Source: Lepidodermella squamata
Lineage: Eukaryota; Animalia; Gastrotricha
Direction: 5' to 3'
Assembly (NCBI GenBank): GCA_047495785.1
Contig: JBLDXI010000032.1
Span: 1,302,001-1,366,000, forward strand
Length of the DNA stretch: 64,000 bases
Shown here: positions 349-21,150 of the stretch, one piece after another
Position numbering within the stretch: the stretch's first letter is position 1
Layout of the letters: the number at the start of each line of letters is the position of its first letter
Program-made: the position numbers and the translations under genes
Notes under the pieces: model-generated
Databases searched by the model: none
Told to the model about the DNA's origin: nothing
Seen by the model: only the letters and a program-made list of their open reading frames with translations

Positions 349-711
349 TCACGATGTTTTTGAAACCAACAGCTGAGAATAACGGGCAATCTGTTTTACG
401 ATATTCCCATTCACATCAGCACCTTTCTGAACCAAATACTTGACATCATCGAGCTGCCACTCCGATAGGACGCGCCCCTTCATTGGCAGCGGCGTCGATA
501 ATAGCACCATTTTCAGGCAGAATCTTGACAACATCTAAATAGCCATAAGATGCCGCGAGGTGTTTTCCCGTGATCTATTCTCGCATTGACGGCAGCTTTA
601 ATTTTGACCAAGTATTCCAGAACATCAACATGCCTTCTCTCTACACCACTGAATAACGATTTTCCTCCCCGTTCTCTTCCAGATAAATTCGCACCACGCC
701 CAACCAACAAT
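349..711 (-). pseudogene. Degenerate, frameshifted ankyrin-repeat coding fragment
   Basis: Two overlapping ORFs in different frames carry ankyrin motifs: LVGRGANL, HVDVLEYLVKIKAAVNARIDHGKTP, and LDDVKYLVQKGADVN. No continuous frame. Confidence 0.6.
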
Positions 712-1051
712 CTTGGTGAAAATTACTTAAAACTTAATTACTTTACTTCCATGAGGGGTCACTTTGAGACATTAAGGGATCCAAAGCAGAACGTGAGGTC
801 CGGCTGTAAATGATTCCAGCTTATCTGACGCATAGATAATTCAGCAAATAATGATCTTCGGTCTTTTCGATATTTAAACACCACATACATCCTAATTGAA
901 CATCTGCTTTCCTTTAATGTCACACATTTGATGTCACAGCTTTGTTGGCAGTGTAAGCAGTAAGAAGAGTTGCAACGTTTGTTTCAAAAAGTTGCATGTT
1001 AGCTCTAAAGTCTCTTCGCAAACTGAATATTTACTTCTATCACGAAAATTT

Positions 1052-3945
1052 ATGGTTGCATCGAAGTATCTGTCGCTTTGCGCCTTAGCAGCACTGGTTC
1101 TTCATTTGTGCAAAGGTGATTTTCAGCTTGATTTGCTAACTACTACTTGCCCAGGGAAAGATGTGATATTATCATCCCAGGCAAATTTTGAATCTTTCAG
1201 CAAGGGCTAATGCAATGTAACCAAATTAAAACGGCCCAACATTCTATGCTATTTTGCTATTCCTCACTGTTACTCCACGAATACACGCATTTTTATACCC
1301 CTAGGTCGACTGCAATCAAAGCGAGCTGCAAACGTCGAGGTTCCAACGTATGATTGCTCAAAATCCGGCGATGTAGAGGTCACGATCGGCGAACAAGTGA
1401 ACAAGCGTGCTCTACTGGTCGCGCATTATAGTGAAATGGAACTGGCTCTCAACTGCACATTCAGGGTGATAACTTCCGCCGAAGGCACTGCTATTTATTT
1501 CCGCCTGAAAGAATTTTTCTCATCGAGTGATCATTGCGAAAATGCTTCTGTTAAGCTGTTTGACGTCGAGTCCGATGAAATTGCGCTTCTCATCAATACT
1601 TATTGCGAAACACCAACGGAAAATAGCGTCAAAGCCTTCTCCACAAAATATGGCGCCCTTACGATTGAAATTCTCGCACTATCTAACGAAACCTTAGCCT
1701 TCGAAGCTGAAGTCTTCCAGATCCCGGCAAATTGCAGTTTCTTCTGTCCGGCCGACGCGAAATGCATTGATGCGGAGAAACGTTGCGACAATCACACAGA
1801 CTGCTTGGATGCCTTTGACGAAGAAGGCTGCGACCTTGATTCAAGTTACGTAGTCGATATTGTTGGGGACCTTTCTGCTAACGATTCTGCTGATTATATT
1901 GCTGCTGATCACGGTAACGGAGACGCCGATGCACCAGTGGTGATCGACCGATCCTACAAGTCTGCAAAAGCCAGCTATTCGCGTTGCGGGTCGCTGTTCA
2001 ATCAAACCGGCATGAAGGGCACTTTCTCTAGCTTATATTACCCGTCCCGGTACGGACGTCGCATCGACTGCTCGTGGGAGATCAACGCAGCTAAGGATCA
2101 CATTTTGATTAGCTTCGACCCTTTGTTCGATATCAATCCTTGCGCAAACATGTTGTTGGAAATGTATGCGCGCAGTGAGAACGGCGAAGAAAAGTTGGCG
2201 AAAAAATTGTGCGGCATGAAAGCACCCATAACATTCGCTATCAAGGCCAATCGTGCTCGCGCCCAGTTCACGTCGGATGGTTACAGCAGTGGCATTGGCT
2301 TCCGCCTTCATTGGACTGCTATTACCGCTGATGAGCTAGGTAAAGTTTCCCAAGTCTACTTTGCACTTCTTTGCGTCGTTGTTAAAGCTCACCTTGCTGA
2401 GTCTACCTATAAAATTGCATGATATTAACGTCAAATTTCTATATTCCACACTTACCTGCAAAACAATGTACAAATAGCTTGACTGCAATATTTTTATGTA
2501 AATATAGCTTCGCTGGTGAAACCCCAACCGATCGTAGGTCCCACCGGCGGCCGCGGGCTAATCTTCCTGAAAAGTGCTGCTTGTCGCCCAAATACTCGAG
2601 GTCAGGTGCTGACCAATCGAACTGGTGTCTTCGGTTCACCTCGCTTTCAAAACGGCGGAAAGTACACATACAGCACCAACTGCATTTGGATCATCAACGG
2701 CGCTGCCGATCAGCGGATTGTTCTACTGTTCTCCGAATTCGCGCTGGAAAACTCGGCCGACTGCACTTTCGACTACGTCACCATCCACGATGGTAACAAT
2801 CTCGTCGGCAAGTATTGCGGCAAGGCATCCATTCCGCCACTTCGATCGAAGACCGACATTGTAACGATCGAATTTGTTAGCAACGACAAAATCGAATATG
2901 GGGTAATCAATATTGCTCGAATTGAAAACAAGAATGGCTTAGAATCATTGAAATTTAAAGTTACCAAAGACACTTGATATATTGCCTTCGAATTTGCCTT
3001 TCGATTTTTTTCAATTTTAATTCTCATATCTGAATTGAAGTTTTACAAGGATATTTTTGAATTTTTAATATTTGGTTGTAAAGCGGGAAAAATCATTAAA
3101 TAATTTTCCAACCTTCAGCCGTTGTGGATCGTTGTGGATGTATTATTGAATCTCTGAATGCTGAGGCTGAAAATTGTGTAATTATAGGGTTTTCGCGCTT
3201 TCTACCGCATGTCGGATGATAAAGACGACGGTTACGGTTTCCGCCGACATTTGACTGATTCAGGTATGAAAAGCCACTTTCCATTGCATCTCACATTCAA
3301 ACGTAATAGGTTTCGAGAGTTCACCGAAGTGGCTCAGCTGAGTTATAGTTATGATTAACAGCAGTCAACGTGATATTAATTCGCCAAACTTGTTTTTTTC
3401 ATAAAGAATATAGCTTCCGAGAACCAAGTGATGCCAATCTACCATTCGACTGCTTTAAAGCCAAACTAGTCGAAGTCAACCTAAAGATTGATAGTGAATC
3501 GACTAAACACGCTCGACTGATTGCTACCCACACGAACGCCGACTCTGAGCACAAGTGCGCGTTCAAAATCAGTGTTTCGAATGATCATTCCAGTAGCTTG
3601 ATCTACTTCCGCCTCAGAACGTTGAAAATGTCTAGTGATTCTTGCGGCAAGTCGTCCGTCATGCTCTTCGACCTTGGAAACAGCGGAAGTAGAAGCTTCA
3701 TGTCATCCTATTGTGAATCAGTCTCGCCTGGTCAAGCTAGGCCGATTGTTGCGAAGAACGGGGCGTTGCTGGTACGCCTGGACGCTATGGCTAACGAGGA
3801 GTTGGCTTTTGAAGCCGATGTCTATCAGATTTCGCGGGATTGTGGCTTTTTCTGCGCAGAGAATGCGACTTGTATCTCAGCTGAAAAACGCTGCGACAAA
3901 CGAGCCGATTGCCTGGATGGAGCTGATGAACGGTTTTGTTTGTAA
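1052..3945 (+). CDS. Secreted CUB/LDLa multidomain protein (signal peptide, CUB-like, LDLa, CUB, CUB, CUB-like, LDLa), ~702 aa; paralogue of the next gene, no protease domain
   Basis: Exons 1052-1115, 1305-2339, 2508-2902, 3188-3263, 3407-3945 join in frame. Signal peptide MVASKYLSLCALAALVLHLCKG; LDLa CIDAEKRCDNHTDCLDAFDEEGC; CUB motifs YPSRY..CSWEI, FSEFALENSADCTFDYVTIHDG, GFRAFY. The last two joins are less certain. Confidence 0.8.
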
Positions 3946-4999
3946 CTTGAAATCTGACGAATAAACGGCTTGACGAAGTTTGTTTTTGCTTAATAAAATC
4001 GCGGAAACGTTGCATTCTGTTTTAAATTCATGAAAAAAACATTTTTTGTTGGTGACCGCATGACTCACGCTGATTCTCATTTCAACAATTGAGAAACAAA
4101 TTATTTTAGAAAATATTGAAGAGCAGTGGCGAATTTTAAAAAGCCTAATGCCGGACGGTAAGAAGGTGGCTTTAAGGTACGATTTTGTTCAGTCTCATGG
4201 AATCTATAATCAATCGGTTTGGCCATTGGACTAAGTACATTTTCGGCCACGCTAGTTTTTAAGGTTGTTAGTGAATTTTGGCGATATCAATATCCAATCG
4301 CCTTCAAAATAACCGATAAATTATAAATCTACACCTTTAAAGGAGTATTTTGAGCCCAAGAACTTCATGATTCGAGCAAGGGTTCAAGCTGTTCGCCATT
4401 AGTCAATCGATTGATCGATTATTGGCAAAATTTCATGGTGATATCGAATATTCTGCGCAGCAGAACTGACTTTCTAAGTTAATAAGCCATTGTTGATTGC
4501 GAATTTGAGAGCAACATTCAAGCCTGAAGTTTTGCTAGCAAGTTATCGAATGATTTCTACTTTATCGTTATCGGCAAAATCGGTCAATATTTCTGGGGCA
4601 GCGATATTTGAAAAACAGCAGGGATGAAGGGTTTTTGCATCAATTCATATATCTCTAATAATATTTCATTATTTTTAGAGAATAAATTTTGCTGCTGATC
4701 ATTGTGCGAATCAGATTTTTTTGTTTTGATTATAATTTAGTTATCACCTAGGTAGGGATTAACCTCCTCTTCTCTTTCTACAACTGTTAGCTAACAGCTA
4801 TAAAACAATGACTCGATTGACGGTGCAACAGCTTGGCAGCACACGAGTTTTGGCGGCTCGCGATCTCAGGGTGTTACAAGCCCGCGCGCGCGCGATTTAA
4901 CATCTCTCCAACTGAAAAATTCAAATTTCATAAATTATCAAACAGTTTAACTACATTTTTACCACTACAGTTTGTTGCTCTCGCACATTTTTTTTACAT

Positions 5000-7900
5000 A
5001 TGAAATTGTTTACAACCCTGCTGTGTGCCCTAGTGGCACTGGCTGTTCAATCATGCTACGGTAGGCAAACATTTTTTTTTATTTTTAAATTTTAGAAATA
5101 AAATCACGAAATCCTGGAAATCGTCGGAATATAATTTAAATTCAATTTGTTGCTTATTTTTCAGGCCGTCTTCACATGAAGCGAGCCATTAAGAACCCAG
5201 CATCTTACAGCTGCTCGAAATCCGGCGTTGCGGACGTCGTGATCGGCGAGCTGGCGCCTTTGGGAAAACGCGCTGTTTTAGTCTCGTCTTACTCGAAATC
5301 GAAACCCGGCCTCAACTGCACCTTCCGGGTGTTCTTCCCCGAGGAAGACCACACCGAAAGCGTCATCTATTTCCGCCTCAACACCTTCACCTCTTCGAGC
5401 AAAAAGTGCGAAAAGGCATCGGTTCGCCTGTTCGACGTAACCGATGAAGACAGGTCGCAAATCGATGCATTCTGCGAAACTAAACCCAAGAGCAGCTTGA
5501 AGGCCTACTCGTCGAAATACGGCGCCCTTCTGGTTGAAATTCACGCGCTGTCTAGCGAAACGCTAGCCTTCGAAGCCGAGGTCTTCCAAATCCCGGCTAA
5601 TTGCGGTTTCTTCTGCCCGGCCGATGCGAAATGCATCGACTCTGCGAAGCTTTGCGACGGCCGCAGCGACTGCTCTGATGGGTTCGACGAGAAGGGGTGC
5701 GGCGCCCATGGCACCCAGGGTGACTCGAATTACGTCACCGGTCAAGTTGGAGCGTTGTCGATCAACTACGGCAAGGAGATCAGCCAGTCGATCAGCGAGT
5801 TTGACCGATCGTCCACCTTGGAATTGGTCGACCCTGAGGAAGCTCCGGAGCACTCGATCCACATCGCCACGCCTCCTGAGGACGAGACTGCAGATCGAGG
5901 TTCCAACTACAACTCGGCCGCTGGCCAGTCCGGCTGCGGGTCGCTGTACAACCAAACCGGTATGAAGGGCAGCTTTTCCAGCTTCAACTACCCGTGCCCA
6001 TACGGACCTCGCCTGACCTGCTCGTGGGAGATTAATGTCCCGAAAGATCACGTGATCATGTTCGGCTTCAACCAGCAGTTCTACGTCGAGCCGAATAAGC
6101 AACCGGCGGCTGCAGGTGTCCTGCCGTGTAATGATCAGCTGAACCTGTACGTCAAGTCGGAGGAGACTGGCCAAGACCAGCTGGCGAAGACGGTGTGCGG
6201 CAACAAAGCACCTGCCAATTTCTTCGTCAAGACAAACCGAGTTCGTGTCGAGTTCAAATCGGACGATAATGACGACGGTTACGGATTCCGTCTTCATTGG
6301 ACTGCTTTGACCACTGAACAATTAGGTAAAAATTATTTTAGTGTTTAACGTCTCGCTCCTTAACATTTTTGAGGTCAAATTTCCGGAATTATGAACAAAT
6401 TAAATTTTTTAATTTTTTCTAGTTCCAGAGTGAGGCCTTCAGGAATGCGGCAAATTTCTTTATTTTTTCAAAAATCAAAATTATTAAGGATGATTTTTAA
6501 TTTTTCCATAATTTTGAGCGCATTATTTCAGAAATTTTGCAACTTTGCGTAAACCTGAAAAAAAATCGGAATATTATTTAGCATCTAGGCCAAAGATATT
6601 TTGAGCCTGGGAGTTTTTCGGGTTCGCGTCAGTCTAATGCATTTTATTTTAAACAATAAAATTAATCGAATAAATCAATCATGCGGAAAAAAACGATAAT
6701 TGGCGACTGTTTCATTAATTTTATTAAATTAAATTATTTCTAGCTGCGTTGATGAAAAGGCCAACGATCTCGGCTACTGCTGCGCCGACTCTTGAAGGCA
6801 GCGGCCGGCTTCTCGCCAGCCGCAAGCCGATCGTCCTGAAAACCTCTGCCTGTGCGCCTGGAACTCGTGGCCAGCACCTGGCCGGCCGAACTGGTCTCCT
6901 CGGCTCGCCCCGCTTCAAGGACGGCAACTACACCTACGGCGCCAACTGCACATGGATCATCAGCGGCGCGGCTGATCAGCGGATTGTTCTATTCTTCTCG
7001 GAATTCGCGCTGGAAGACTCGACCGAGTGCAATTTCGACTATGTTGACATCTACGACGGCAGCGATCTTGTTGGCAAGTACTGCGGCAAAGCCTTCGTAC
7101 CGCCATACAGATCGAAAACCAACAAAGTCACCATCAACTTTGTCACCGACAACAAAATCGAAGATACGGTGAGTAGAAACGAAAATTTCGAAATTCATGT
7201 ATAATTTTTAGCGAATGAATTGATTTAGGATTATTATTTCAAATTTGAAAAAGGTTCCCCAAGTGAACACCCTACATTTAAGGTTCAAGGTTCCAGAACT
7301 AAAGTTCTCTAATTTGATGGGTTCCCAGTTATCCTGTGGTTTTAATTTCTAGAATTACCGAAAGAAAAAATCACAAGTATAAAAATCGAGTGCTGGAATT
7401 AGTTCTGGAACCTAAATTTTATATTCAAAATATTAGGAATCATCAAAATAAAAATTGAAAAAATGAAGAATGCTGGTTTTTTTTACTTTAAATTTTTTGA
7501 TTTTTCAATATCGAACTTTTCCTTTCAGAAATTCAAGAAATAAAATGCAACAGCATCAAAAATATGTACGGAAATTTAGCTGTGGAACCTTGAATTTAAG
7601 GTGTTCACTAGGGTTCAAGGTTCACTGAACCCTTTTAAATTTGGCAATTTAATAGGTTTTATTCCTTCTCAGTCCTTAGTTCTAACTTAAAACCGATGCC
7701 TTCTAATTTCAGGGATTCCGCGCCTACTACCACATTTTGAAGCCTGAAGATATCAACGATAAGGCGAATCGCGCCAAGCCGAAGTACACCTCCCTCGATG
7801 AAGACTGTGAGACTCGTTTCGGCCGCATTCTCGTTAATGATAAAACCGATGTAACCGCCGCTGCTGCTACCGCCTCGCCCGCCGTAGTCGAATCTCAAAC

Positions 7901-9350
7901 AACCACCAGCGCCAATGCTGTCACCACACCTGCCGAGTCTACCCGCCCGGCGCCCTCGACAATCTCAGTTGCGGATAAAGACTACGATACCGATAGCGAT
8001 GTTCGAAGCTTGGTGCCTAAAAAGGTGAATAAGAAGCCGAAGATTATTCGCCAATCGCTCGCCAAGTGTGGCCATGTGTCCGGCAAGGCGTGGGCGGCGT
8101 CGTTCGATGGCACGTGCCACGGTGCGTTGATTCACAAGCGATGGCTGCTGGCGACCACCAACTGCATGGCCATCCCTGCGGCTGGTTCGGCTGGCGATCA
8201 AGTCGAGTTCGATAACGTAGTCGACTGGGTTTCGAACAAGTCCATTGGTACTGTCAGCGCGATGTCTGTCATGGACTTCAAGTTCCGCGAGGCTGAACAC
8301 AAGGTTCACATTTTTGCAAAATAAAAATTAAATAAAAAATTGAAATTTTGAAAAAATTCAATTTTTTTAAATTCAAATTCCAAATTTGAACAATTTTAAA
8401 ATTTTAACTTTTTAATTTTAATTTAGGAATGATTTAATTTAGAATTATTCAATTTGAATTTTTTATTTTTTACCCGATTTTTATACAGGCAAAGGCCGTG
8501 TCCCGCTTTACTGGAATGACCCTTGTTCAACTTGCGAAACCAGTTGAGGATGCTCAAACATCGCCGGGCGTCGTCTGTCTGCCATCTGACAACGGTGACG
8601 ATGATACTCCGGACGGTGCCTGCGAATTCCCGATGGCGCCATCTCTCACGAAACGCTATCACCACCTTTACGAAAAGTCCAAGTTGTCCGACGATGCCTG
8701 CAACCTTATTCTGCTATCGGCCAAGGGCGCTAAAATCGCGGCTGAACGAACTCACATGTTCGAGTGCTTCCTGGCCCAGGACGTCGATGCTGGCGTCGAA
8801 GTTTCGAGCAATACCGACAAGTTCGCCGTGCAAAAGCAGTACTGCGAGGTGCCGAACAAGTCGCGCTATCGCAATTTGTTCGACGAGTTTCCGCTCAAGT
8901 ACTGCAAGAACTACCAGGAGGCGTGGACTATTAACGGCATTCTTGTTCAAGTTCTGACGTCGAATCCGATCAAATGCGGCGTTTTCGACGAGGCTGGCTC
9001 GGCTGGCATCGATGCCGCTACCACAAAGACCGACAACCACCAAATTATCGCGGTAATTTATTTCCTATTTTTCCTAAATTAATCCTAATTTTTCCAATAA
9101 TTTAAAATATTTTTTAATTTTGTAAAATAATTAATCAATTAGTTAAAAAAATTATTAATTAAATTATTAGAATAAATAATTAATTAAAAAAAATTATTAA
9201 TTAAATCATGAAAAATTAACGAATTTTCTTGAAATTTTGAATTTTTCCCAGGTCTATGTTCGCGTGTCCCACTTTTTCGAATGGATCTTCACTTCGACCG
9301 GCAACGCAGCGGATTCGAGCAGCTCAACTCTCAAGTTCGAAGAATTGTAA
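5000..9350 (+). CDS. Secreted CUB-LDLa-CUB-CUB protein with C-terminal non-catalytic trypsin-like (S1A homologue) domain, ~966 aa
   Basis: Exons 5000-5060, 5165-6325, 6744-7168, 7713-8303, 8489-9052, 9252-9350 join in frame with GT-AG sites. Protease fold motifs: CHGALIHKRWLLATTNC, GMTLVQLAKPV, VVCLP, WTINGI, VYVRVSHFFEWI. Confidence 0.88.
7262..7609. mobile_element. MITE-like element with imperfect terminal inverted repeats in intron 3 of the protease-homologue gene
   Basis: AGTGAACACC...TTCAAGGTTCCA at 7262 versus TGGAACCTTGAATTTAAGGTGTTCACT ending at 7609. Confidence 0.5.
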
Positions 9351-9784
9351 CTATTTCACATCATTTTGAACAGCTTTTTGTATGGCCAATCGATAGCCGC
9401 ATTATCATTATTATATTATGAAATCAACTTGTTATCCACACACGGCTGCATATAATGAAAAAATAAACAACGAATTTTATGAAGTTCGCGCATTGTTCTA
9501 ATAATATATTGATCGGTTGCGAAATCAGCGAAAAAATCGACCGGCGCATGATTTAGCAGTACACACTGGTTGTGAGCAATGAAAATATATGGCCAGTGAT
9601 TAATAATTAACCAGAGTCACCCGCCGCTCAAGTGGATATTCGCGCTTTCGAAAACAATGCAAAAAATTAACGATCGATCGCCAATTCTCGGCTATTGTGG
9701 CCGCTCTACAGACGACACTTGATACTTCGGGTTTATTTACGCCATCGCAAAATTCGATATATACCATAATATAATATTTTTTTC

Positions 9785-12226
9785 ATGGCTCCTGCAAGAC
9801 GGCGATCTTTAGTGAGATTTGCGGCTATTCTCTGTGCCGTAGCTTTTTTAATCACCCTATTGAGGCTGTACCATTTAGAGGTACGAGCGCAGTACCGCCT
9901 TAAAATCGCCACGCTTCGCCGCTATTGGAACGCACTGACCGTGAACGAGGCGCAGGGTGCGCGCATGAAGCGCACAATTGACAAATGCTCGCGATGGCTC
10001 ATCTCCGAGGCAATCGACAAACCATCGCGGCGATTCGAGCGGCATTTCAATGACTCACCGCCGGTTACAATCGGCGGGGCACAGACGGCAGAACCGATGA
10101 AAGTGCCGTGTTCAGTCGCGTGTGTCCACCTTAACACGAAATCAGACCCGCAATTAGACGCGAGTATCGAATTTTTACGCCTAGCAGACCGGCGGAGGAT
10201 GAAAATTTTCTCGATAATTCGAACCATGGAATCGGCGACTAGCATGCCGTCCAGCTCGTTCGACACCGCGAAACAGACGTACGATATAGTAATGACCCCA
10301 AATTTGCGATCCCACGTCCCTGTTCCTTATTACTCGTGGGTGACTTATAACTTTATGGAGCCGGTCGAACTGCCCAAGCCGCAGTTGTTCGAACTCGCCT
10401 CAGCCTTCATTTCAAACTGCATCGCGGCAAGTTTCCGACTTCAAGCTATTGAGCTTTTCCAGTCGAAATACGCCGACAATTTCACGGTTGACTTCCGTGG
10501 GAAATGCGGGAAATCTAAAGAGCGTGCCAATTCTAACAAGGCTGAGGTGATGCGGCGATACAAATTTCACTTCGCTTTCGAAAATTCCGAGGAGGAAGAT
10601 TACGTGACTGAGAAATACTTCGGAGCCCTAGTCGAGGGGGTGGTTCCAGTCGTTATCGGCGCGCCAAATATCGCGGATTTCGCTCCGGCTAATGACTCGA
10701 TTTTAGCTATTAGGTCGATAGATTCCGTGCCGGAAATTGCTGAAAGAATGATTGAGCTAGATAACGATGACGAGGCTTACGAGCAAATGCTTCGATGGAA
10801 ATTTGCTGGACCTTCAGACCAATTCAAAGCTCTAGTTGACCTGGCTGTGGTTCATTCATCTTGTCGATTATGCATTCATGTCGCTGATCGAATTCGGCTG
10901 GATCAGGAGTGTCGGCTATTCGGCCGCCAGCATGATTCTAGTTGCTTGGACAGCGATTATTTGGATGATAATGATGACGAAAATTTGATAGCCATGCTTG
11001 AGCAGGGTATCAGCAGAAATGCGTCAGTTTTGCCGCCTGAGGATATTGATGGTGAACGAGTTGCAACTACGCCATCAGTTGAACCTATGCAAAGGCCGTG
11101 TAAATGTCGCGTTGACACTGGCGTGGATGGCGAAGAAAAATTCGACCTTCACCTTTTCAGAGTTCGAGAGGTGAGTTCGAAAAGTTTTACAGGGATTTGC
11201 ACCCTAAATCCTAACTGTATTGGTTCCAATATTAAATTAGAGGCTTCAGAGTTTCTCGGTTTCATTAGAATCTGAACATTTTCATTATCATGCCTAATCG
11301 ATGAATCCTATATTAGGATGAGCGGTCAGTTTCCAAGCCGTACTTTAACCTGCAGGCCGATATCGATTACAATATCGATTCCAAGTATCGATTTTACAAA
11401 TCAGTGATTTTTTTCGATAACAGAAGTTTCGGAAGTCATTATTTAAAATATTTCCACGTAAATGATGGAGCCAGGTAGCTAAAATAAAAATCCCTGGGTC
11501 ATGGGGGCATAATTATCGACCAATAAAAGAATCGGAACATTTTAGTGACTCCTCAATGTTGCGGGAAAGTTTTTGTAAGTGGATCAGCGTTGCTTTAGAA
11601 ATTTGGAATTTTTTCATCTTGGGTGGATTCATTTTTCCAAAAATAAGGCACGGCTACATAATTTTTAGCCGTTTTCTTATCTGTTCAGTCAATCTTTTCA
11701 GCCTTAAATCCATGGTTAGACTATTGTAAAATCACCAAACCAGAGTGCTCGAGTGGTTTAAGAGGTCAGACTTAAGATCTGATGGGAGTAATCCCGCGTG
11801 GGTTCGAACCCCACCTCTGGTATCAGCATTTTTTATATCGAGATTCCTATATTTTTTTCTAATTTTTTTCTGCAGCGTGGCCGTTTCGAATTTACTCCAG
11901 TCTTTCTCGACTCGCGATCACTAACAGTTCGATCTCTTCACGCTGCTATAATACGAAGTTTCCGAACTGCCGATCCTCACTTCCAACCAATATGGACTGC
12001 CGAACGAGACGATCGCGGCCGCCAAGTTTCGCCGCAAGAACAACATTCCTTAAACAGCACTACTGCCAAGTTGAAACCGCCCAAGCTGAAAATCTACCGC
12101 GTCTACCCTGTTGGAGCTAGCCAGCGCGCGGCTTTGTACGATGGTGCAGCTATCGACTCGGATAAAAAATTGCTTAATTTCATGAAATTTCGCCCATGCG
12201 GCCGGCTGGAGGTCATTTTCATCTGA
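9785..12226 (+). CDS. GT10 glycoprotein core alpha-1,3-fucosyltransferase, plant FucTA/B (FUT11/12)-type, ~578 aa, type II membrane protein
   Basis: Exons 9785-11170 and 11876-12226 (phase 0, GAG|gtgagt ... tgcag|CGT). N-terminal TM; GT10 motif YKFHFAFENSEEEDYVTEKYF; plant-type segments RTMESA, VPVPYYSW, AFISNC, WKFAGPSDQFKALVDLAVVHSSCRLCIH, RPCKC, VRERGRFE, KIYRVYPVG.SQR.ALY, LEVIFI*. Confidence 0.92.
11318..11510. repeat. Dispersed repeat family A, copy in the FucT intron
   Basis: ATGAGCGGTCAGTTT...CCTGCAG...TATCGATTCCAAGTATCGATTTTACAAATCAGTGATTTTT recurs at 25484-25570 and partly in reverse near 29445-29475. Confidence 0.7.
11739..11822 (+). tRNA. tRNA-Leu (anticodon TAA), inside the FucT intron
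   Basis: Acceptor stem ACCAGAG/CTCTGGT plus discriminator A; anticodon arm TCAGA-CT TAA GA-TCTGA; long variable arm GGGA-GTAA-TCCC; T-arm GTGGG-TTCGAAC-CCCAC; oligo-T Pol III terminator at ~11829. Confidence 0.95.
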
Positions 12227-12564
12227 AAAGATTCGGCATAAAAATCCAAGAAATTCCTCATCCAGATTTATTCGCAACTTTAGCTGAAATTTTCATATTT
12301 CTTAATTGTGATATTTTCGTATATACTGAAACTTGTTGCTTATGTATAACCAAAAGTGCTTTTTTATAACAAAACATGATATTTCCATAAATAAATGAGC
12401 TTTTTTATTATATGTATTCCCGCGTTTTTTCACGATTGTAACGTTTCTGCGATCATTTCAACGAGTCTAGCGCCTTTTGCTGCGAAGAAGCAGCAGATCG
12501 TTATCAAATCGTAGCTCGAGACTTGGTTCATGATTCCGGCCGATTTCAACGCTTGAATGTGCTG
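12156..12564. repeat. Direct segmental duplication, copy 1 (functional FucT 3' end plus degenerate INTS15 3' end)
   Basis: Colinear with 15808-16218, e.g. CGCCCATGCGGCCGGCTGGAGGTCATTTTCATCTGA and CACGATTGTAACGTTTCTGCGATCATTTCAACGAGTCTAGC. The INTS15 part carries indels in this copy. Confidence 0.95.
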
Positions 12565-13099
12565 ACACATAATTTCAAAACTTTTGGAAAAATTTCAATT
12601 TCAATTAAAAAATTCAAGAAAATATCGATTAAAATGTCATTTTTTCCTCCATAGGGCTCTGATTGCAACAAAGCGGAAACTGGAAATAATACCGGTGATA
12701 GTATAATACGCCCTCAGAATTGTCGTTCCCAGCCCGGACTCAGCGTTTCGGAACGAGCTATGCCAGCTTTCAGCAAATTCAAGCTATTGGAAGCGGATGA
12801 GGGCAAATTCGGCCAATCAAAAGAAAGGCAAACGGCGTCTTTGCACTAGAGGTGGCGAAATTTTCTATGCTTCACTGGAACGTTCTGAGACATGTTTGGA
12901 GATTGTTTAACAAATAAATGCCTATTATTTCGCTAATTTGAATTTTTATTTTTATTAATAATGCGAGAAATACTGGCGATTCGTTCGTTTTTCGACATTA
13001 AAGTTCATCAAAGATGGGCAAAAAATATTTTTTGCAAATTAAAATTTTGAGGTCGGATGCTCACTTTTGCATATGCAATAATATCATAGGTTTTTGTCT

Positions 13100-13387
13100 T
13101 TAGTAGTAATACTTAGTATTTTGTCGGCATTCCATCCGCTCAGCCAATTTAGCAATACCGTAAGCAGTTAGCGTAGCCACCACAACAACTGCGCCAATCA
13201 GGACAATCGGAACCATCATGGCAGGAAGCGTAGCCGTCAAATATTTACCAAACACGATGGTACAAGGTTCGAAGCTTTCAATGTTTGATTTCTGCTCAAA
13301 AATACCAATAGCTTTCCACGTCCAAGCCATAATCTCTAAAAGTGCCACCAAAGGAATAATTGCTGATATTACAGCCGCAAAACCCAT
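13100..13387 (-). CDS. Small orphan protein with two hydrophobic segments, ~95 aa
   Basis: MGFAAVISAIIPLVALLEIMAW and LPAMMVPIVLIGAVVVVATLTAYGIA; a short GTAAGT...TTTTAG intron lies just upstream of the ATG. Confidence 0.45.
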   Translation of the reverse strand: MGFAAVISAIIPLVALLEIMAWTWKAIGIFEQKSNIESFEPCTIVFGKYLTATLPAMMVPIVLIGAVVVVATLTAYGIAKLAERMECRQNTKYYY

Positions 13388-13665
13388 CGTTTTATAAAAA
13401 TTAGCTCTAAAAGGCGAAAAAACATTTAAAATAGGACGCACTCTTCCATACTTACATTCGTATTTATGTTTGAAACTTCAACCTTTCATAAATAGTTGTT
13501 CATCAAATTTGAGCTGGAGTCATATAGGAAATGCTAAATGACTATTTCTTGTCTGATAGGCAGTGGGGTTTCGAATTTGTAGTTAATTTTGAAAGCGATT
13601 TCTGGTGACGTGCTAGAGCCTTGTGCCTTAAAATCAATCTTCTCCAAAACGCGAAACTCATGCTG

Positions 13666-13743
13666 AACCTAAACCTAACCCTAATCCTTACCATGCCCTA
13701 ACTCTGTCCCCACCCCTATTCCAGAAACCTAACCTTAACCCCC
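13666..13743. repeat. Degenerate CCTAAC/CCCTAA-rich tract
   Basis: AACCTAAACCTAACCCTAATCCTTACC...AACCTAACCTTAACCCC. Confidence 0.5.
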
Positions 13744-13837
13744 TACGATCATTGTTTTTTGATAAAAAAAATTGAATGAAATATTAATGAAAGGTCAACA
13801 TTTCAAGCATAAATATGAATGAAAAAATCACTTCGTT

Positions 13838-14346
13838 TTAAGAATGAAATGAATTATTAACACCTCCTGATCCTGATTCCTGATCGTGATCTTGACCTCT
13901 ATAGAAACGTCTCAAAGTCTTAGCTAAGACAAACACAACCCAGCCAATTGCTGTAAGTCCGTACAAATTCTGCGCGCTCATCTTGAATCTTATATTACAC
14001 AGTAAATTGTAGCCAGTTTTTGCGGCACTCTCTGAATTGCCAGTATCAATATTCATCGATATGGAAGCGTCAATGAAACAAACAATCAGCGACATGACCA
14101 AAATTGCTGCAACAGCAAGGGAGACCGCCTGTCGAACTCGCCTGTCGGTGTTCCCATTTTCGGTCGCATTTTCGGTGTTCCCAATCCTTGATGTGAATAA
14201 TTTAGAGACAAGTTGAAGTTAATTTCTGCATAAAATATGTGACTGTTAACAAGTGAAAAGTGGGGTTTGGCGAATTCAAGATCAATGAACAAGTGGTCAA
14301 ACGATATCAAGAAGAAGATGATAGTCATCACGGCTGCTGAGATCAT
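13838..14346 (-). CDS. Membrane-protein-like coding segments; possibly 3' exons of the RING gene or a separate small TM gene; model unresolved
   Basis: Hydrophobic runs ISAAVMTIIFFLISF, AVSLAVAAILVMSLIVCFI and LYGLTAIGWVVFVLA in two frames. Confidence 0.35.
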
Positions 14347-14644
14347 GGGCTTCAAAGTTTACCCGTGAAAATTGCCAATTTCGAAAAAATCCGCGCTTCA
14401 ACAATTCAATTTTTTTAATTGCATTGTAATTGTTTAATAATTCGTCGCGCAATAACTTTTTTTCTTATGCGAAGTTGAGATATTCTGCGGGAATCTGGGG
14501 TGAGGAATCTAGTTATAGATAGTCAGAAAGTTGAAAGGTATCAAGCTAGGGCTTCAACCTAAATCGATAAGCCTTTTCGGTGACACTTTGGGTGGATTTT
14601 GAGGTGGATGGCGTGTCCCATAAGTAACGCAGGCAAAGAAAATA

Positions 14645-14815
14645 CATGGCCAGAAAAATTTTAGAAAAATTAAAAAAATCACGAGAGTAGAAATTAAGAA
14701 CGTCACTTGTTAATGGGATTAAAAAGTCCGCAGAAATCAACCGGGTAAAACACCGAAAATTACCGAACCAGTTACCTTCGGGGTTTTCTCCGGTAAATTT
14801 GTTATTTCTCCGGTT
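14645..14815. repeat. Dispersed repeat family C
   Basis: CATGGCCAGAAA...ACCGAAAATTACCGAACCAGTTACC...GTTTTCTCCGGTAAATTT is the approximate reverse complement of 38561-38697. Confidence 0.7.
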
Positions 14816-14984
14816 AAATCGCAGATAAATTTAATATCTGGTAGGTTTAATGTAAAAAAAAATCCTCAAGAAAAACTCGGCCATCTTCGAGACAACAGAC
14901 AACACGCTTATGCCATTTGCTAGAAAATACGCAAACCCCAATTTTCACTTGTTAAAGGTCATTTGTAATCACTAACAAACTTAC

Positions 14985-15226
14985 ATGTGTGGCGAATCAT
15001 CTTTGAAGTAATCTCTGCGGGGATCATTGTAATCTGACTGACCCAGGCCATATACCGGTATAGTGTAGCGAGCAATTTGGCGACAAATGGGACAGTTCCT
15101 TGTGGCAGACAATAGCGCAGCTTGACATTGCCAGCATAGCACGTGACCACATTGCAAGGCGATTGGATGTAGAGCTTCATCCTTACAAACAGGGCATTTG
15201 TAAAAAAATTCGTCGTTTAATGCCAT
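14985..15226 (-). CDS. First exon of a C3HC4 RING E3 ligase, RNF5/RNF185-like
   Basis: CPVC...CGHVLCWQC...CPIC followed by IPVYGLGQSDYNDPR, resembling the RNF5/185 post-RING motif VPLYGRG...DPR. Donor AT|gtaagt at 14984. Confidence 0.7.
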
Positions 15227-15807
15227 TTTCTAAGCGTTGCACAAGTGTCTTTTAATTTTTTATTTGGGATTAATATATGAACAATTTTTATGTATCAAAA
15301 AATTTGAATCAGAATTGAAAGATGAGTCATAGCACGCCGCATAAAGTCGCACGCGCGAATGAAACGCTCGCGATCCAATTGGTTGAGGCTTATTGCGGAA
15401 CTCGAACTCCAAAAACTCCAAGAAATAAAATATTTTAAAATTTAAAATCAACTTGGAATAAGTACCTATGAAAAAGGGAAAATACAAAAATTTTGCCTGT
15501 TATTCCACGCACCACGCATATCGAACCCTAGTGCGCTGTTATTCTCCTGAATTTCGGACTTTTTGTTGCGCATTAAATGCGAGCGCAATACATGCAGAAC
15601 TGGGCCGATTTATCGCCTGTGTGTGCAGCCGACCTGCCCTGACCTGCCTTGGCTTTGATGATAAAAATGCTCATGAAATCACATTTTTATTTTTTACTTT
15701 TTAATTAAAAGATGAATTTTAGTAATATTTTGAAAATTCATGTCTGATGGCTGCGTGAGGTTTTTACTCTTGTAGCGAGTGGGCTCTCGCACGATTGCAT
15801 TGTAAAA

Positions 15808-16218
15808 ACTCGAATAAAAAATTGCTAAATTTCATGAGATTTCGCCCATGCGGCCGGCTGGAGGTCATTTTCATCTGAAAAAAATCGGCATAAAAATCCA
15901 TGAAATTCCTTATCCAGATTTATTCGCAAATTTAGCTGAAATTTTCATATTTCTTCATTGTGATATTTTCCTATACTGGAAATTGTTGATTATGTATAAC
16001 CAAAAGTGCTTTTTTTTATAACAAAACATGATATTTCCACAAATAAATGGGCTTTTTTATTATATATTTCCGCGTTTTTTTCACGATTGTAACGTTTCTG
16101 CGATCATTTCAACGAGTCTAGCACCGGATTGCGGCGTGAATTTGCTGCGAAGAAGCAGCAGATCGTCGCGCGAGACTTGCTGCATGATTCCGGCCGATTT
16201 CAACGCTTGAATGTGCTG
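15808..16218. repeat. Direct segmental duplication, copy 2 (orphan FucT tail plus functional INTS15 3' end)
   Basis: Encodes SNKKLLNFMRFRPCGRLEVIFI* on + with no upstream FucT sequence; INTS15 C-terminus intact on -. Confidence 0.95.
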
Positions 16219-19200
16219 TAGTAGCCGGATAATCGGGACATCGAGCAGGGTTGATATCATGGTCGGTACGCCGATCATTAAGGCGGCTTCGGTGAAGAGC
16301 TGGAAGGACAGCCCAGTCAACTCGGATGACGTCAGCCTCGGGTATGGCGCATTGCCTGCTTGGCCTTTACAGCTAGAGAAAAAAACAAGAAAATCAACTC
16401 ATTTAACGAAAAACCCTCAATTCTTATCGTGTGAAAATTAAAATTAAAATCGAAAAAAAATAATTAGGCTCGAAAATTACGTCTGGGCAGTATTTTTAAA
16501 TAGGCTCTTGGAATTATCAAGCCAAGCATGAATTTAATAGAAAGCTGTAACAGGCTATACTTCTCTCTGGAAACCGGAGCTAAAGATGCTGGACGAAAAA
16601 GGGTAATAGAGCTCGTAATCCATTAATTTTCCCACACTGGTCTCATGTCCAAAACGCGAACAGGCCAATATGGAATTTCTGAAGCGTTTTTGGTAATTTT
16701 CGCGCTTCGCTTTCAGCTAGAATGGAAATAATCCCAAGTCATCGCTCACAATTACTAAAAACTCGCCAAATAGCTGCAAATTTGATCATTGAATCTTTGA
16801 TTTACTGGAGGTCTCTTGTTGGATCCTCCATCTTTGATTTACGGCTGAACTCACTACAATTATGCGAGCAATTCATCCATTAGGTATTGGGCATCCCTGA
16901 GGCTTTTAAACAGAAAGTATGTCAAAATTTATCAGTCGTTTATGCTAATACGAATGGCTTGGAATGCTTTGAATGCCATCAGGGACCACTGCAGACTGCG
17001 CCTTCCCTCTATCGACAGTTTTCAACCTCTACTACTCAATCATCGGTTATTCTATTCCCGCAACCAACGGCTATTTCGACCCCGCAGCAACAGGCTATTT
17101 CAACCCAGCAAGCACCGGCAATCTCGGGTGATGAGAATTGCGTTGAATTCCTTGAAGCGTGCGCGGCATCTTCCCCGCGCATGCCGGAATTGAACGACTA
17201 TTCCGAATCCTTCCTACAGTCGGAAATCAACCTGTGCCGGTGAACCCCGTGCCCGGAAGTTCTTCCAAAATGACCTACCAAATTCTCACGCTCACCTACC
17301 AAATTAGCGGAATTTCGGAAAGAACGATTTGAACCATCGTTGAAATGGTGATTGCGATGTTACCATACAGCGGTGTCGACCAAAGATGTTCTGGGCGGTA
17401 GCTGCGGCCTACGCAGTGTAAATTGTGAACAGGATTCCGCACTTTGTATTTTCGCCTCGTAGTTTTTCGACTTGAAATGTTTGTGACGGTTAAAAACTAT
17501 AATTCCATATTATCTATTTCTCATTAACTGCGCACGCTTCTTCAAAATTACCAGATTAATAAATTTAAACACAATATTTTAGCAAGATACTTGTGCAGTT
17601 TCGAGTCATTTTATTTCATTAAGATGTTATATATATTCGTACATATGTATTCGTACAAAGTGCCCATCGTCAGGCAATATCTCAGAAAATGCCCTACGAT
17701 TCGATACTAACATCTATCGGTTCGGTACTCAGCTTAATAAATTTGTGGGAAATAATCTTCTAAAAATTCCTGATTCAATTATTTCCATAAAATTCTCAAA
17801 TTACTAATTTATCAATCTCACTGACTCACTGAGGCAGCAGTTCAAGGATCTGAGTATTAAATATCACTCAACGTCGAACTGGTCTTCACCAGCCGTACGA
17901 TTGTGAGAAATTTCCTGCCAAAGAAAAAAGCTGCCTATGATCAATACTCAAAGCGTGGTATATTACTCCAAATTTACTCGGTGCGACGCCGACTAAGCAG
18001 GTATGACCACCAAGCACCTACACCAACGAATTGACCAACACCGGTATATAGAACGTGGGCTGCCTCGAGTCGAAGTTTACTGTCCTCGCGAAGTGCAGAT
18101 CGAAGTTAGACTGCCTCGTATATGAAATGCTATTCATCCGCGAGAAAAATTGATCAATCAACACTGTTATTGTGTCTGCATGTAAATATTTTTTCTTTCG
18201 TGAACTCTGCATTTTCGATGCGCTTGTGTTTTTTCTTTTATTGTGTTATTTTTGTTTTGATATCGTAAAATTTCAAATTGTAAAAAATTGAGATTGACAA
18301 AAATTCTTTTAAAAAATCAGGAATATCTCTGTATACTATTAATTTAGTCGCTTCCAAAGCCGGTTTGACTTGTGTTTTCTGTCTATATCGGACTTTTTAA
18401 ACTTCCCACGTCTAAAAATCGCTCCGAATTAGGAAAAATCCGGTTAACAGACTCCGGTTTACAATTTTTGATAATTCGATTATTTCCAAAGATAAGTTAC
18501 TCACCTGAAAGCAGCAAGAAGTAGACTAGAATTGAGCCTATCAGCGATAGATTGCAACTTCTTCACCGCGTTCCGGTCGACCGACTGCAGCCAATTCGCG
18601 TTGGCAGTGTTCATAATGGTGGTCTGGGTTACAGCAGTCGCCGTGGTTATCAAAACGATAAAATTCGAAAGACTGGCTATGAGCGAGTTGGAACCAGTTG
18701 GCGAACAGATCAAAATATTAGGAAATTCAGATAGCCATTCTACAATGACTTCAAGCCATGGTAAGCTGAACTGGTCGGGCGTGAAAGCTGAAGAGAAAAA
18801 ATTACCAAAAAATTAAGAAAATATGTTAATTTCTTACTTTGCAACCGCATTTGCCTGGCCGATAGCAAAGCACCTTGAGCGAGAACCGAGGCGAAGGGCA
18901 GCGATAATTTGCTCAATTGCCGAACTGATTGAAACGCATTAGGACACAAAACTTGGTAGTCAGTAGTCAACGAGAAAAAAACGGCCTGAAGAACGGGCGA
19001 AGGGCACGCCTCTAAAATATGAGCCAGTCTGTGAAGAACCGCCGGCGATCCCATTCCGGTCGCGAGTGAGGCTAATTGGCAGATGCTCAGGTAAAACCCG
19101 GCTTTAAGGTGGCTTTCAAAAATCGAGGTTAGGAAAAACGGGCCGGCTGATGATAACAACTCGCCGCCGCCTCGCCTAGCACACCGTTCAATAATCGCCA

Positions 19201-19417
19201 ATAAAATTTGAAATTCGACGACGGGTGACATATCGGGGGTCAAAACTAGACTGCCGCTTTGATTTCGGGCCAGGGGCAGAATTCGATCGGCAATCGCCGC
19301 GATTTGCCCGGCGTCAGCTCGGCTGTCAACGGCCATTTCTAGCTGGTACAACGCAATTTCATACGGCGGAGCGTACGGCCCGGGCGGTTGAGGTGGATTA
19401 ACAGCGGCAGAAATCAT
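16081..19417 (-). CDS. INTS15: Integrator complex subunit 15 (C7orf26) homologue, ~384 aa
   Basis: Exons 19417-18838, 18787-18505, 16372-16081 join in frame. Motifs matching remembered human C7orf26: EFQIL, QLASLA..PAVL, TDYQVLCP, LEVIVEWLSEFP (LEMIVTWIFEDP), RLLQHIQ...SRDDL (RLAQALQ...TRDDL). Confidence 0.82.
17840..18165 (+). mobile_element. Decayed Penelope-like retroelement fragment (GIY-YIG endonuclease) in INTS15 intron 2
   Basis: Hand translation gives VELVFTSRTI, NTQSVVYY..RCDAD*AGMTTKHLHQRIDQHR and SKFTVLAKCRSKLDCLVYEMLFIREK, with stops and frameshifts. Confidence 0.75.
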
Positions 19418-19521
19418 TGAAAATAAAACTCGTTCTAAAAAACATATTTATTACGTACAATTCATCCATACAAAAAAATCGACATAAATTAGCACTTTCA
19501 CGGTGGATTTTTTTTTAAGAA

Positions 19522-19887
19522 TTATTGTTCTTTAATATCGCGTGATTTCGCGTTAACATCAATCGCTATTGGATTCGCCTGCATAAATCGGTCCAGATAC
19601 AGCAATTGTTTCTCCATTTCGCTGTTAAGCGAGCAAAGTTGACTAGATAGCAGGAAAGTTTTTTGTAGGGTTGTCGATGACGTTTCGATTGTTCGATCCT
19701 GACCCGCAAATGTCTTGGCCGTGCTCATCAAAAGTTCTTGCGAGCCGCTGCCTTTTAAAACCAGCTTGCACAACGCGGCCAATTCGGCTACAGAACCAGC
19801 TGCTTTGTCGTTCAATTTCGATTTAACAGCATGGTACGGCAGTGCCGATGCTGATAGCGGCGGTGGTGATGTGGGCACTTGAGACAT
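19522..19887 (-). CDS. BORCS7: BLOC-1-related complex subunit 7 (C10orf32), intronless
   Basis: VKSKLNDK...ALCKLVLKGSGSQELL..TAK...QDRTI..S..TLQK matches remembered BORCS7 (VKGLLTEK...ALTKQVLKGSRSSELL). Confidence 0.88.
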   Translation of the reverse strand: MSQVPTSPPPLSASALPYHAVKSKLNDKAAGSVAELAALCKLVLKGSGSQELLMSTAKTFAGQDRTIETSSTTLQKTFLLSSQLCSLNSEMEKQLLYLDRFMQANPIAIDVNAKSRDIKEQ

Positions 19888-19938
19888 TTAATTAAAATCC
19901 CTATTAACAAATATCGAATATTAAAATATGGCACCTAT

Positions 19939-20274
19939 TTATTTGAGTGGCTGAATTTTTTTCTCTTCGTAGTCTTTTACAACTTGTTCATAAGTTTGTC
20001 CATAAGGCAGAGGTACAGATGGGTGGGGATGATACATCCATTCATCCAAATCGTTTTCTCGTCGAAGAACGCAGAAATACAGCATGAAAGCCGCGGTTGA
20101 TACACTGACGATTAAGCGCTGGTATCGCGGCCTGTTTCGAAACCCACGATCGAAGAATGTATCGACAGATTCGTAGTTATTCGCTTTCGACTCTGAAAAT
20201 TTGACAGCATCGCCGCGTTTCGGAGCTGACGATAGCAATCGTCGAGCTACCGTTGTAACAGCACTTCTTAACAT
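19939..20274 (-). CDS. UQCC4: Complex III assembly factor UQCC4 (C16orf91/CCSMST1), intronless
   Basis: Mitochondrial-type presequence MLRSAVTTVARRLLSS, VKFSESKA, RPRYQ, single TM, and YFCVLRRENDLD motif. ATG at 20274. Confidence 0.85.
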   Translation of the reverse strand: MLRSAVTTVARRLLSSAPKRGDAVKFSESKANNYESVDTFFDRGFRNRPRYQRLIVSVSTAAFMLYFCVLRRENDLDEWMYHPHPSVPLPYGQTYEQVVKDYEEKKIQPLK

Positions 20275-20361
20275 CAAAATATCTATGTAGAAAATTACAT
20301 CAAAATGTCAACAAAATGTCTACAAAAGGAAGTTTACTCGAGAGATAACAAAACAGATTTC

Positions 20362-21150
20362 TTAAATAGCATCCGATGAAAGGCAATCCAAAATTGACAC
20401 TAGCTTTAATTTCACGTAGCTGCGCTGCTCGTCATCCATATCGCAAATTGAGGTGGATATGGTTGTTTTCAAATTAGAGAGCAGATCACTGGTTGTGAAA
20501 GATTTGAAAACATCAATCGATGAAACAGTTTCATCTTCTGTGACGTTACGAGCTATATCAACGAGTGACTGCATTAGACTTTCCCGGGTTTGTTCAAGTC
20601 GTTTCGCTGAAATCGAGCTCCGGGAACGTTGAGTTGATAGCTCACTTTCTAAGCGGTTAATCGCAGTTTTCAACGAGTCCGTGTGAGCAGATAACAAGGC
20701 ACTCTGCTGCTGCGCCTCGCCGACCTCTTTTTGCAAACGACGGAATTCCTTTTCCCGTTCACGGTTATGAGCAATGAAAGCTTGAGTAAAAATCGGAATT
20801 TGATGCTCTTTCTCGCCATTTTCCTTTTGAGTTTCGACGTATTTCGCATTGGATGCTTGACGCTCATTTTCAGCGCGAGCCTGTTCGTTGTATCTCTCAC
20901 GCTCCTCTTGATTTAAATTACGCCAAACACCCCCAATCGTAGTAAGATAATCCTTAGGATTGAGGTTGGGAGATTCAACTTTTAGTCGAGGAAGACGTTC
21001 TTTCAAGAACATATGATAGGCTGTGGCAACTTTCTTCTTCGTGACTCCGTCTCCGTTGCCTTGTTTAGCTTGGTTCTGAGGTTTTCTCTTTACTACTTTC
21101 TTTGCTACTTTCTTCTGCGGCTGGGATGTTTCGCCATTTGATTCGGACAT
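20362..21150 (-). CDS. HMG20: HMG20A/B-like HMG-box plus coiled-coil chromatin protein; CDS intronless
   Basis: HMG box TAYHMFLKE...IGGVWRNLNQEERERY followed by IPIFTQAFIAHNREREKEFRRLQK (HMG20 IPIFTEEFL..KAREAELR.LRK). Confidence 0.85.
   Translation of the reverse strand: MSESNGETSQPQKKVAKKVVKRKPQNQAKQGNGDGVTKKKVATAYHMFLKERLPRLKVESPNLNPKDYLTTIGGVWRNLNQEERERYNEQARAENERQASNAKYVETQKENGEKEHQIPIFTQAFIAHNREREKEFRRLQKEVGEAQQQSALLSAHTDSLKTAINRLESELSTQRSRSSISAKRLEQTRESLMQSLVDIARNVTEDETVSSIDVFKSFTTSDLLSNLKTTISTSICDMDDEQRSYVKLKLVSILDCLSSDAI

Follow-up and report, generated by a model that had tools for sequence, protein, structure and literature searches.

A predicted AtFUT11-type GT10 fucosyltransferase gene in the genome of the gastrotrich Lepidodermella squamata: an old resident probably not derived from a land plant

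The window, by which we mean the whole 64,000-nucleotide stretch that was analysed (contig JBLDXI010000032.1 of assembly GCA_047495785.1 of the gastrotrich Lepidodermella squamata, positions 1,302,001 to 1,366,000 of the forward strand, with coordinates below counted from its first letter), contains a two-exon gene for a glycosyltransferase of family GT10, and this gene, its product and its origin are the subject of this report. The original prediction, made from the letters alone, had taken it for a plant- or algal-type core alpha-1,3-fucosyltransferase set between animal genes and acquired by horizontal transfer. The gene is laid out as follows.

9785..11170, + strand: GT10 exon 1, 462 codons, amino acids (aa) 1-462, starting at the first in-frame ATG and ending in phase 0.
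11171..11875, + strand: GT10 intron, 705 nt, GT..AG, phase 0, between VRE and RGRFE.
11876..12226, + strand: GT10 exon 2, 116 codons (aa 463-578) and the stop codon, covering most of the C-terminal Rossmann subdomain and ending in EVIFI.

The intron opens with the donor GTGAGT at 11171 and closes with the acceptor ctgcag ending at 11875, and the spliced product is 578 aa long. Two sets of reads were compared with the window, a run of complementary DNA (cDNA) and a separate DNA run, which has many differences from the window sequence and covers the whole examined stretch of 5,001 nt. In the cDNA run one contig links 11168 to 11874 and skips exactly 705 nt, and when the cut is shifted by 2 nt the skipped segment is bounded by GT..AG and the junction is the predicted one, joining 11170 to 11876; read depth in this run is present on the exons and is zero on the unique bins of the intron. 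A loose end in the same run is the reverse complement of the SMART oligo. Together with the open reading frames (ORFs) and the Pfam match to PF00852, this splice bears out the spliceosomal intron and the 578-aa GT10 gene that had been predicted. The differences in exon 1 in the read list were 19 synonymous and 7 nonsynonymous (n=26) over 402 and 1332 sites, respectively, which gives a pN/pS of roughly 0.1 from a list of polymorphisms that is incomplete, and this indicates purifying selection. Taken together, these data show that the GT10 gene is intact, transcribed, correctly spliced and under purifying selection. The GC content of the gene matches that of its neighbours, and at third codon positions it is 0.51, inside their range of 0.40-0.69.

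Upstream of the GT10 gene lies a gene with CUB and LDLa domains (Pfam), and downstream, convergent with it, lies a block of four genes, so that it has animal-type genes on both sides. Metazoan neighbours had been predicted, and the CUB/LDLa gene and INTS15 were recovered as such, while the protease part ascribed to the upstream gene was not confirmed, as the ORFs at 7707-8321 and 8438-9079 have no Pfam match. The features of the downstream block are these.

16090..21150, - strand: syntenic host block, convergent with GT10, defined by Pfam and by collinear tblastn matches to genes of the metagenome contig L001.
16090-16299 and 18507-19363, - strand: INTS15 (Pfam, tblastn).
19525-19887, - strand: BORCS7 (Pfam, tblastn).
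19942-20307, - strand: CCSMST1/UQCC4 (Pfam, tblastn).
20362-21150, - strand: HMG20-like gene with an HMG-box (Pfam, tblastn).

The contig L001 is 7.8 kb long and carries two GT10 genes in tandem within 435-4101, whose products are P0001 and P0002, and past this pair, on the opposite strand, it carries INTS15, a BORCS7-like ORF, CCSMST1 and an HMG-box gene. This block corresponds to 16090-21072 of the window in the same order and orientation, with identities of 49%, 81%, 61% and 45-59%, respectively (tblastn). Because L001 keeps the gene order, the GT10 gene stood next to INTS15-BORCS7-UQCC4-HMG20 before a deep split, and therefore it was already beside this block before the divergence of two lineages that now differ at about half of their residues. 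The position of the intron is not shared: the L001 genes are uninterrupted, the Chara gene is intronless and the Rozella gene has no intron there. An intron shared with plants was considered and rejected, as the last intron of the Brassicaceae gene lies 12 codons downstream. Thus, neither the intron position nor the base composition carries a signal of a donor. As a separate observation, the two intronless GT10 genes of L001 are 65% identical to each other and were duplicated after the split from the window lineage, and the contig that encodes a further relative, P0137 (contig L002), bears a second GT10-like fragment at 4223-4363, so that tandem duplication recurs in this group.

The possibility that the gene is contaminant DNA or the product of a chimeric assembly was weighed on the same data, together with the contents of the intron, in which two features were located.

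11318..11531 (approximate), strand not assigned: high-copy host repeat in the GT10 intron, word depth about 41,000 against about 100 in the DNA run.
11739..11822, + strand: tRNA-Leu(TAA) in the GT10 intron (ARAGORN; Rfam RF00005, 58.5 bits).

A host repeat and a tRNA in the intron had been predicted and are confirmed by these matches, and besides the tRNA no match to Rfam was found. No point in favour of contamination or chimerism was found. A contig of the DNA run spanning 9250-10020 bridges the 3' region of the upstream gene and the GT10 coding sequence with 7 substitutions and 3 indels relative to the window, and comes from a different individual or haplotype; in addition, a host repeat and a tRNA lie inside the intron, the same gene neighbourhood is present on an independent metagenome contig, and the base composition is like that of the neighbours. 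Contamination, against which the original prediction had also argued, is on these grounds practically negligible as an explanation.

Pfam recognises a single domain in the product, PF00852 (GT10) at aa 204-369 (E 2.1e-29), and exon 2 has no Pfam match. PF17039 (Glyco_tran_10_N) was not found in the protein at E up to 1; of the animal Atlas clusters listed 95-99% carry it, and so does the outgroup sequence from Palpitomonas. Judged by its sequence, then, the protein is without the canonical animal layout, in which PF17039 stands ahead of PF00852, and because PF17039 is absent its architecture is that of AtFUT11 and not the canonical Lewis/FUT10 layout. In keeping with this, aa 65-376 match the crystal chain of AtFUT11 (PDB 9S6A) with an E of 8.8e-73, aligned from AtFUT11 residue 88 onward, while E lies only between 1e-13 and 1e-5 for human FUT9 (1.7e-11), mango FUT13 and the Helicobacter enzyme. 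When the last 116 aa, that is exon 2, were searched alone, they aligned end to end with the last 96 residues of the same chain (AtFUT11 406-501, chain 319-414) with an E of 2e-9. The AlphaFold2 model of the syntenic relative P0001 (mean predicted local distance difference test score 86.4) matches this chain with an E of 1.7e-41 and a template-modelling (TM) score of 0.87, whereas with human FUT9 and mango FUT13 the TM score is about 0.65. In AtFUT11 the donor domain is joined by an N-terminal subdomain that is absent from other solved alpha-1,3-fucosyltransferases and supplies the catalytic base Glu158, the C-terminal 150 residues form a second Rossmann subdomain, and disulfides join the parts (PMC12929593). 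The window protein can be laid out on the same plan, with exon 1 encoding a short basic cytosolic tail, a hydrophobic signal-anchor helix at aa 12-26 (nt 9818-9862) as in Golgi type II enzymes, a stem, the N-terminal acceptor subdomain at aa ~65-192 with the catalytic Glu149, the GDP-fucose (guanosine diphosphate fucose) Rossmann domain at aa ~193-343, a CxxC helix, an acidic linker at aa 377-436 and the RPCKC motif. A type II Golgi membrane topology is therefore predicted, and the P0001 model likewise has an N-terminal helix at 2-28. In the alignment only the window protein and the two L001 proteins have the acidic linker of about 60 aa ahead of RPCKC.

The residues of the active site, taken from the list in PMC12929593, were mapped through an alignment of 45 sequences with a Brassicaceae orthologue whose numbering matches that of AtFUT11 as the reference. 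The catalytic pair Met157/Glu158 of the MES motif corresponds to Met148/Glu149 of the window protein. At the donor site Phe216, Ser218, Asn219, Arg226, Lys256, Asn271, Glu280 and Lys281 (AtFUT11 numbering) are identical and the one change, Arg248 to Lys, is conservative, and the disulfide cysteines Cys91/124/128/364/367/391 are all kept. Among the acceptor contacts Tyr192, Met157, His361 and Ser362 are kept. The overall identity to AtFUT11 is 41-47%, and both proteins share the three-part architecture and an EV(I/V)F(V/I) C-terminus, whereas the window protein differs from AtFUT11 in its acidic linker, in Arg248Lys and three acceptor-site changes described below, in its intron position and in belonging to a separate deep clade.

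The best explanation of these observations is that the gene encodes a working Golgi type II GT10 enzyme of AtFUT11 architecture, which is part of a deep pan-eukaryotic family and did not come from land plants; we consider this likely, with the function read from the sequence. The catalytic base, Glu149 (Glu158 in AtFUT11), and part of the site for the N-glycan would come from the N-terminal subdomain, the Rossmann donor domain would bind GDP-fucose without a metal, and the C-terminal Rossmann subdomain would be stapled by disulfides to the N-terminal subdomain. The enzyme would then attach fucose by an alpha-1,3 bond to the innermost N-acetylglucosamine (GlcNAc) of N-glycans that bear GlcNAc on the alpha-1,3 arm. 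The product of such core alpha-1,3-fucosylation, which we infer for the window enzyme, would be an epitope of the anti-horseradish peroxidase (anti-HRP) type, common in invertebrates. As to its origin, the gene may have descended from an early opisthokont or eukaryote ancestor and been lost in most animals.

How the family is distributed bears on this origin. In a word-indexed search with exon 1 the first matches were P0001 and P0002 from the metagenome contig (46% and 41% identity), followed by more than 100 land-plant FucTAs (38-49%). A search with the C-terminal region of P0001 against the word-indexed collection returned only P0001 and P0002 among the matches listed, which is not evidence of absence elsewhere. 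When 1.84 billion cluster representatives were searched exhaustively with a profile, 447 proteins came out at E < 1e-30, and by a hidden Markov model of the C-terminal domain most of the 150 nearest representatives carry this domain; window exon 2 matches the model too. The carriers include Rozella allomycis (Holomycota; EPZ31356), the raphidophyte Heterosigma akashiwo (A0A6V1N1J2), the diatom Stephanodiscus (KAL3789308), the rhizarian Leptophrys vorax and the streptophyte algae Chara braunii (GBG84902), Closterium and Mesotaenium, and the choanoflagellate Salpingoeca helianthica has it in a weaker form, while the more distant family members Naegleria, Protostelium and Palpitomonas are without it. 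The plant motifs listed in the original prediction are indeed all present in order in the alignment. Their use together with the C-terminal domain as a plant hallmark does not hold, because that domain is not plant-specific, as the carriers named above show. The window protein and many protist sequences end in LEVIF(V/I) and have an IDSD.K motif, at which land plants differ. A scan of metagenome contigs gave 80 loci, none above about 37% identity over the full length, and a scan of viral contigs gave only weak matches of about 30% and no sign of a route through giant viruses.

A maximum-likelihood tree of 62 rows and 460 columns was built under LG+C20+F+G4. The full AtFUT11-type enzymes form a clade of 42 rows (support 100/100), which also holds the Rozella, Heterosigma, Chara and Stephanodiscus sequences. 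Within it the closest partners of the window protein are P0001 and P0002 (100/98), and this trio joins P0137 and P0034 (99/91). This five-member window clade stands apart from the land plants, whose clade is supported at 100/100 without the window protein, from the zygnematophyte group, from the Rozella group and from the diatoms, and it has no supported sister group in the tree. Four placements were compared by the approximately unbiased (AU) test.

Window clade inside crown land plants: difference in log-likelihood (delta lnL) 65.3, p-AU 0.002, rejected.
Window clade sister to land plants: delta lnL 23.6, p-AU 0.092, not rejected (disfavoured).
Window clade with the Rozella group: delta lnL 12.4, p-AU 0.207, not rejected.
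Window clade with Salpingoeca: delta lnL 33.3, p-AU 0.073, not rejected.

In this tree the window protein belongs to a deep clade of its own within a pan-eukaryotic radiation whose backbone is poorly resolved.

Several points weigh against the reading of an old family member retained by descent and acting on the core GlcNAc. No named animal is found among the 120 best word-indexed matches or the nearest 150 cluster representatives, and this lack would fit transfer as well as loss. The backbone within the 42-row clade is a polytomy, the tree was built without the canonical animal GT10s (insect FucTA, nematode FUT-1, FUT10/11), several of its rows are long-branched, and the groups for the AU tests were chosen with a first tree already in view. 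The animal origin of contigs L002 and L003 is not shown. With regard to function, three acceptor contacts are changed, Tyr163 to Met, Glu197 to Thr and Asp120 to Met. Glu197 of AtFUT11 contacts the core mannose (PMC12929593); its position, codon 187 of the window gene (10343-10345), is T/I/F/T/L in the five members of the window clade, whereas the non-plant relatives Rozella, Heterosigma, Chara and Leptophrys keep Glu and Salpingoeca has Asp. As this residue is replaced throughout the clade, the enzyme may use another acceptor than AtFUT11 does. This leads to the alternative that the enzyme has the same fold and acts on another acceptor, such as antennal N-acetyllactosamine (LacNAc) or its N-acetylgalactosamine-containing counterpart LacdiNAc, the distal core GlcNAc or a protein domain, and not the proximal core GlcNAc. 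Besides the three substitutions, it is relevant here that AtFUT11 itself has a side activity on LacNAc (PMC12929593) and that human FUT10 and FUT11, long annotated as alpha-1,3-fucosyltransferases, are protein O-fucosyltransferases (PMC11949838). However, the protein retains the catalytic base as well as Tyr192, Met157 and the two residues, His361 and Ser362, by which the GlcNAc of the alpha-1,3 arm is read, and its overall similarity to AtFUT11 is high, so that we regard another acceptor as rather unlikely.

With regard to origin, an ancient transfer from a non-plant eukaryote (a protist, an alga or an early fungus-like organism) into the ancestral lineage, followed by the gain of the intron and the linker, duplication and retention, has somewhat less than an even chance in our estimation. 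The absence of named animals among the closest relatives, within the matches listed, favours transfer, and the window clade has no supported sister and its grouping with the sole choanoflagellate sequence is only marginally tolerated (p 0.073). On the other hand, there is no clade that could be named as the donor, a placement with Rozella, which is an opisthokont too, is not rejected, composition and intron positions carry no donor signal, the synteny with L001 makes the gene older than a deep split, and the searches that would name animals depend on word indexing and are drawn from the matches listed. A fuller version, that a very old non-plant transfer was followed by expansion of the gene family with a remodelled acceptor pocket, Glu197 being lost clade-wide, and that core-fucosylated or new epitopes would be made by an enzyme type otherwise unknown in animals, is possible and we hold it only tentatively. 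Vertical descent with losses is slightly favoured, and very old non-plant transfer is nearly as likely. A transfer from a land plant or green alga is, in contrast, very improbable. It is true that the best named matches are land-plant FucTAs at 38-49% identity, that streptophyte clusters come first in the Atlas and that a position sister to land plants has a p of 0.092. Yet nesting within crown land plants is rejected, the land-plant clade is fully supported without the window protein, the C-terminal motif AAIDSDKKL...CG.LEVIFI is closer to protist than to land-plant sequences, the plant intron lies 12 codons from the window intron, plants top the match list partly because they dominate the databases, and a gene that has a syntenic tandem pair in a relative as distant as L001 is no recent arrival. 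Moreover, a plant-derived alpha-1,4-fucosyltransferase of a whitefly is listed at 76.1 (PMC9599486) against the 38-49% seen here, a much nearer tie to plants. The earlier proposal that the gene came from a plant, green alga or protist thus fails for nesting among land plants and stands insofar as a very old protist transfer is still allowed, and overall the earlier interpretation is partly supported.

Comparison with known systems places the favoured reading of an AtFUT11-type enzyme not derived from land plants in context. Rozella, Heterosigma, Chara and Stephanodiscus proteins share the domain layout including the C-terminal LEVIF(V/I), and those of Salpingoeca and Leptophrys have the same layout and are more distant; unlike the window protein, these non-plant members keep the acidic residue at position 197, and none has a supported sister tie to it. 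Drosophila FucTA and C. elegans FUT-1 are also GT10 enzymes and catalyse the reaction proposed here for the window enzyme. Invertebrate core alpha-1,3-fucosyltransferases yield the anti-HRP epitope (PMC8724618), and invertebrate alpha-1,3-fucosyltransferases are reported to have two Pfam GT10 domains and the plant enzymes one (PMC6536626). The window protein has PF00852 only, and is in this respect set apart from FucTA and FUT-1 by published description. The vertebrate enzymes FUT10/FUT11 (POFUT3/POFUT4) and the Lewis-type FUT3-7/9 share the GT10 donor domain and the GDP-fucose motifs, but they are much more distant, as seen from the E-value and TM score of FUT9, their Atlas clusters carry PF17039, and they use different acceptors (PMC11949838). 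The whitefly Bemisia tabaci offers a precedent for plant-type N-glycan enzymes in an animal genome, an alpha-1,4-fucosyltransferase (Bta08851) and a beta-1,2-xylosyltransferase, which unlike the window gene are reported plant acquisitions, the fucosyltransferase with the tabulated value of 76.1 given above, whereas the window gene lies outside the land-plant clade (PMC9599486 for the whitefly genes).

In the literature covered, which is incomplete, no AtFUT11-type enzyme is described in an animal. Core alpha-1,3-fucose is a cross-reactive, allergenic anti-HRP epitope common to plants, insects and helminths, and to our knowledge it is made by a different GT10 subtype in the animals studied so far. 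The presence of an AtFUT11-type enzyme in an animal lineage would mean that this subtype is not peculiar to plants. Apparently its design is an ancient eukaryotic one, which some animals have kept or re-acquired. For work on the mechanism of AtFUT11 the window enzyme may serve as a natural comparison, with the same catalytic apparatus and one contact to the core mannose changed. For transfer screens the case is a caution, as the finding that the best hits are plants mirrors the make-up of the databases and the patchiness of the family and not a plant donor.

Some further features of the locus were recorded. The tRNA-Leu(TAA), which is on the same strand as the GT10 gene, has a depth of about 3,750 in the DNA run, which suggests many near-identical genomic copies. 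The intron repeat is at about 400 times the single-copy level in that run; it has a core of about 40 nt (11372-11412), with many loose ends at 11372 and 11412 from which reads lead on into a large variety of flanking sequences, and the window holds further copies at 25484-25684 (71%) and 29428-29469 (86%). The 3' end of the gene is itself duplicated.

12156..12564, + strand: duplication copy 1 (direct duplication of 409 nt), made up of the final 71 nt of the GT10 coding sequence and of 3' flank.
15808..16218, + strand: duplication copy 2, containing a relic of the GT10 3' end (the last 23 codons and stop, 15808-15878) near the 3' end of INTS15.

The two copies are 87-96% identical at a spacing of 3652 (blastn, repeat search), and the relic at 15808-15878 matches the gene at 87% over 23 aa (tblastn) and 96% over 71 nt (blastn). 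The duplication also takes in part of the 3' end of INTS15, the relic lying about 210 nt from the end of that gene, and the position of copy 2 matches the place of the second tandem GT10 gene of L001 relative to the INTS15 of L001. The relic was considered as the remains of an old second tandem GT10 gene as in L001 and this was rejected, because at 96% identity it is a young duplication of the gene's own 3' end; no other GT10 remnant was found within 12227-16100. The approximately 3.2 kb between the copies looks like an insertion that split two once tightly convergent genes.

On the upstream side, cDNA contigs confirm that the last intron of the CUB/LDLa gene (9051-9251, GT..AG, 199 nt) is spliced out, and they place its poly(A) site at about 9463-9483, with poly(A)/poly(T) ends at 9483 and 9429 just past AATAAA. 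The gap between the 3' end of this gene and the GT10 start codon is only about 300 nt. The sole match of the HMG20-like protein in the word-indexed protein collection, among the matches listed, is its L001 orthologue, and either the lineage is thinly sampled among public proteins or the gene is fast-evolving. Finally, at 31245-33611 on the - strand there is a long-chain acyl-CoA-ligase-like gene, apparently made up of four ORFs with very short gaps of about 13-56 nt between them; its 247-aa exon is an AMP-binding enzyme by its Atlas name, and this layout fits a genome with small introns.

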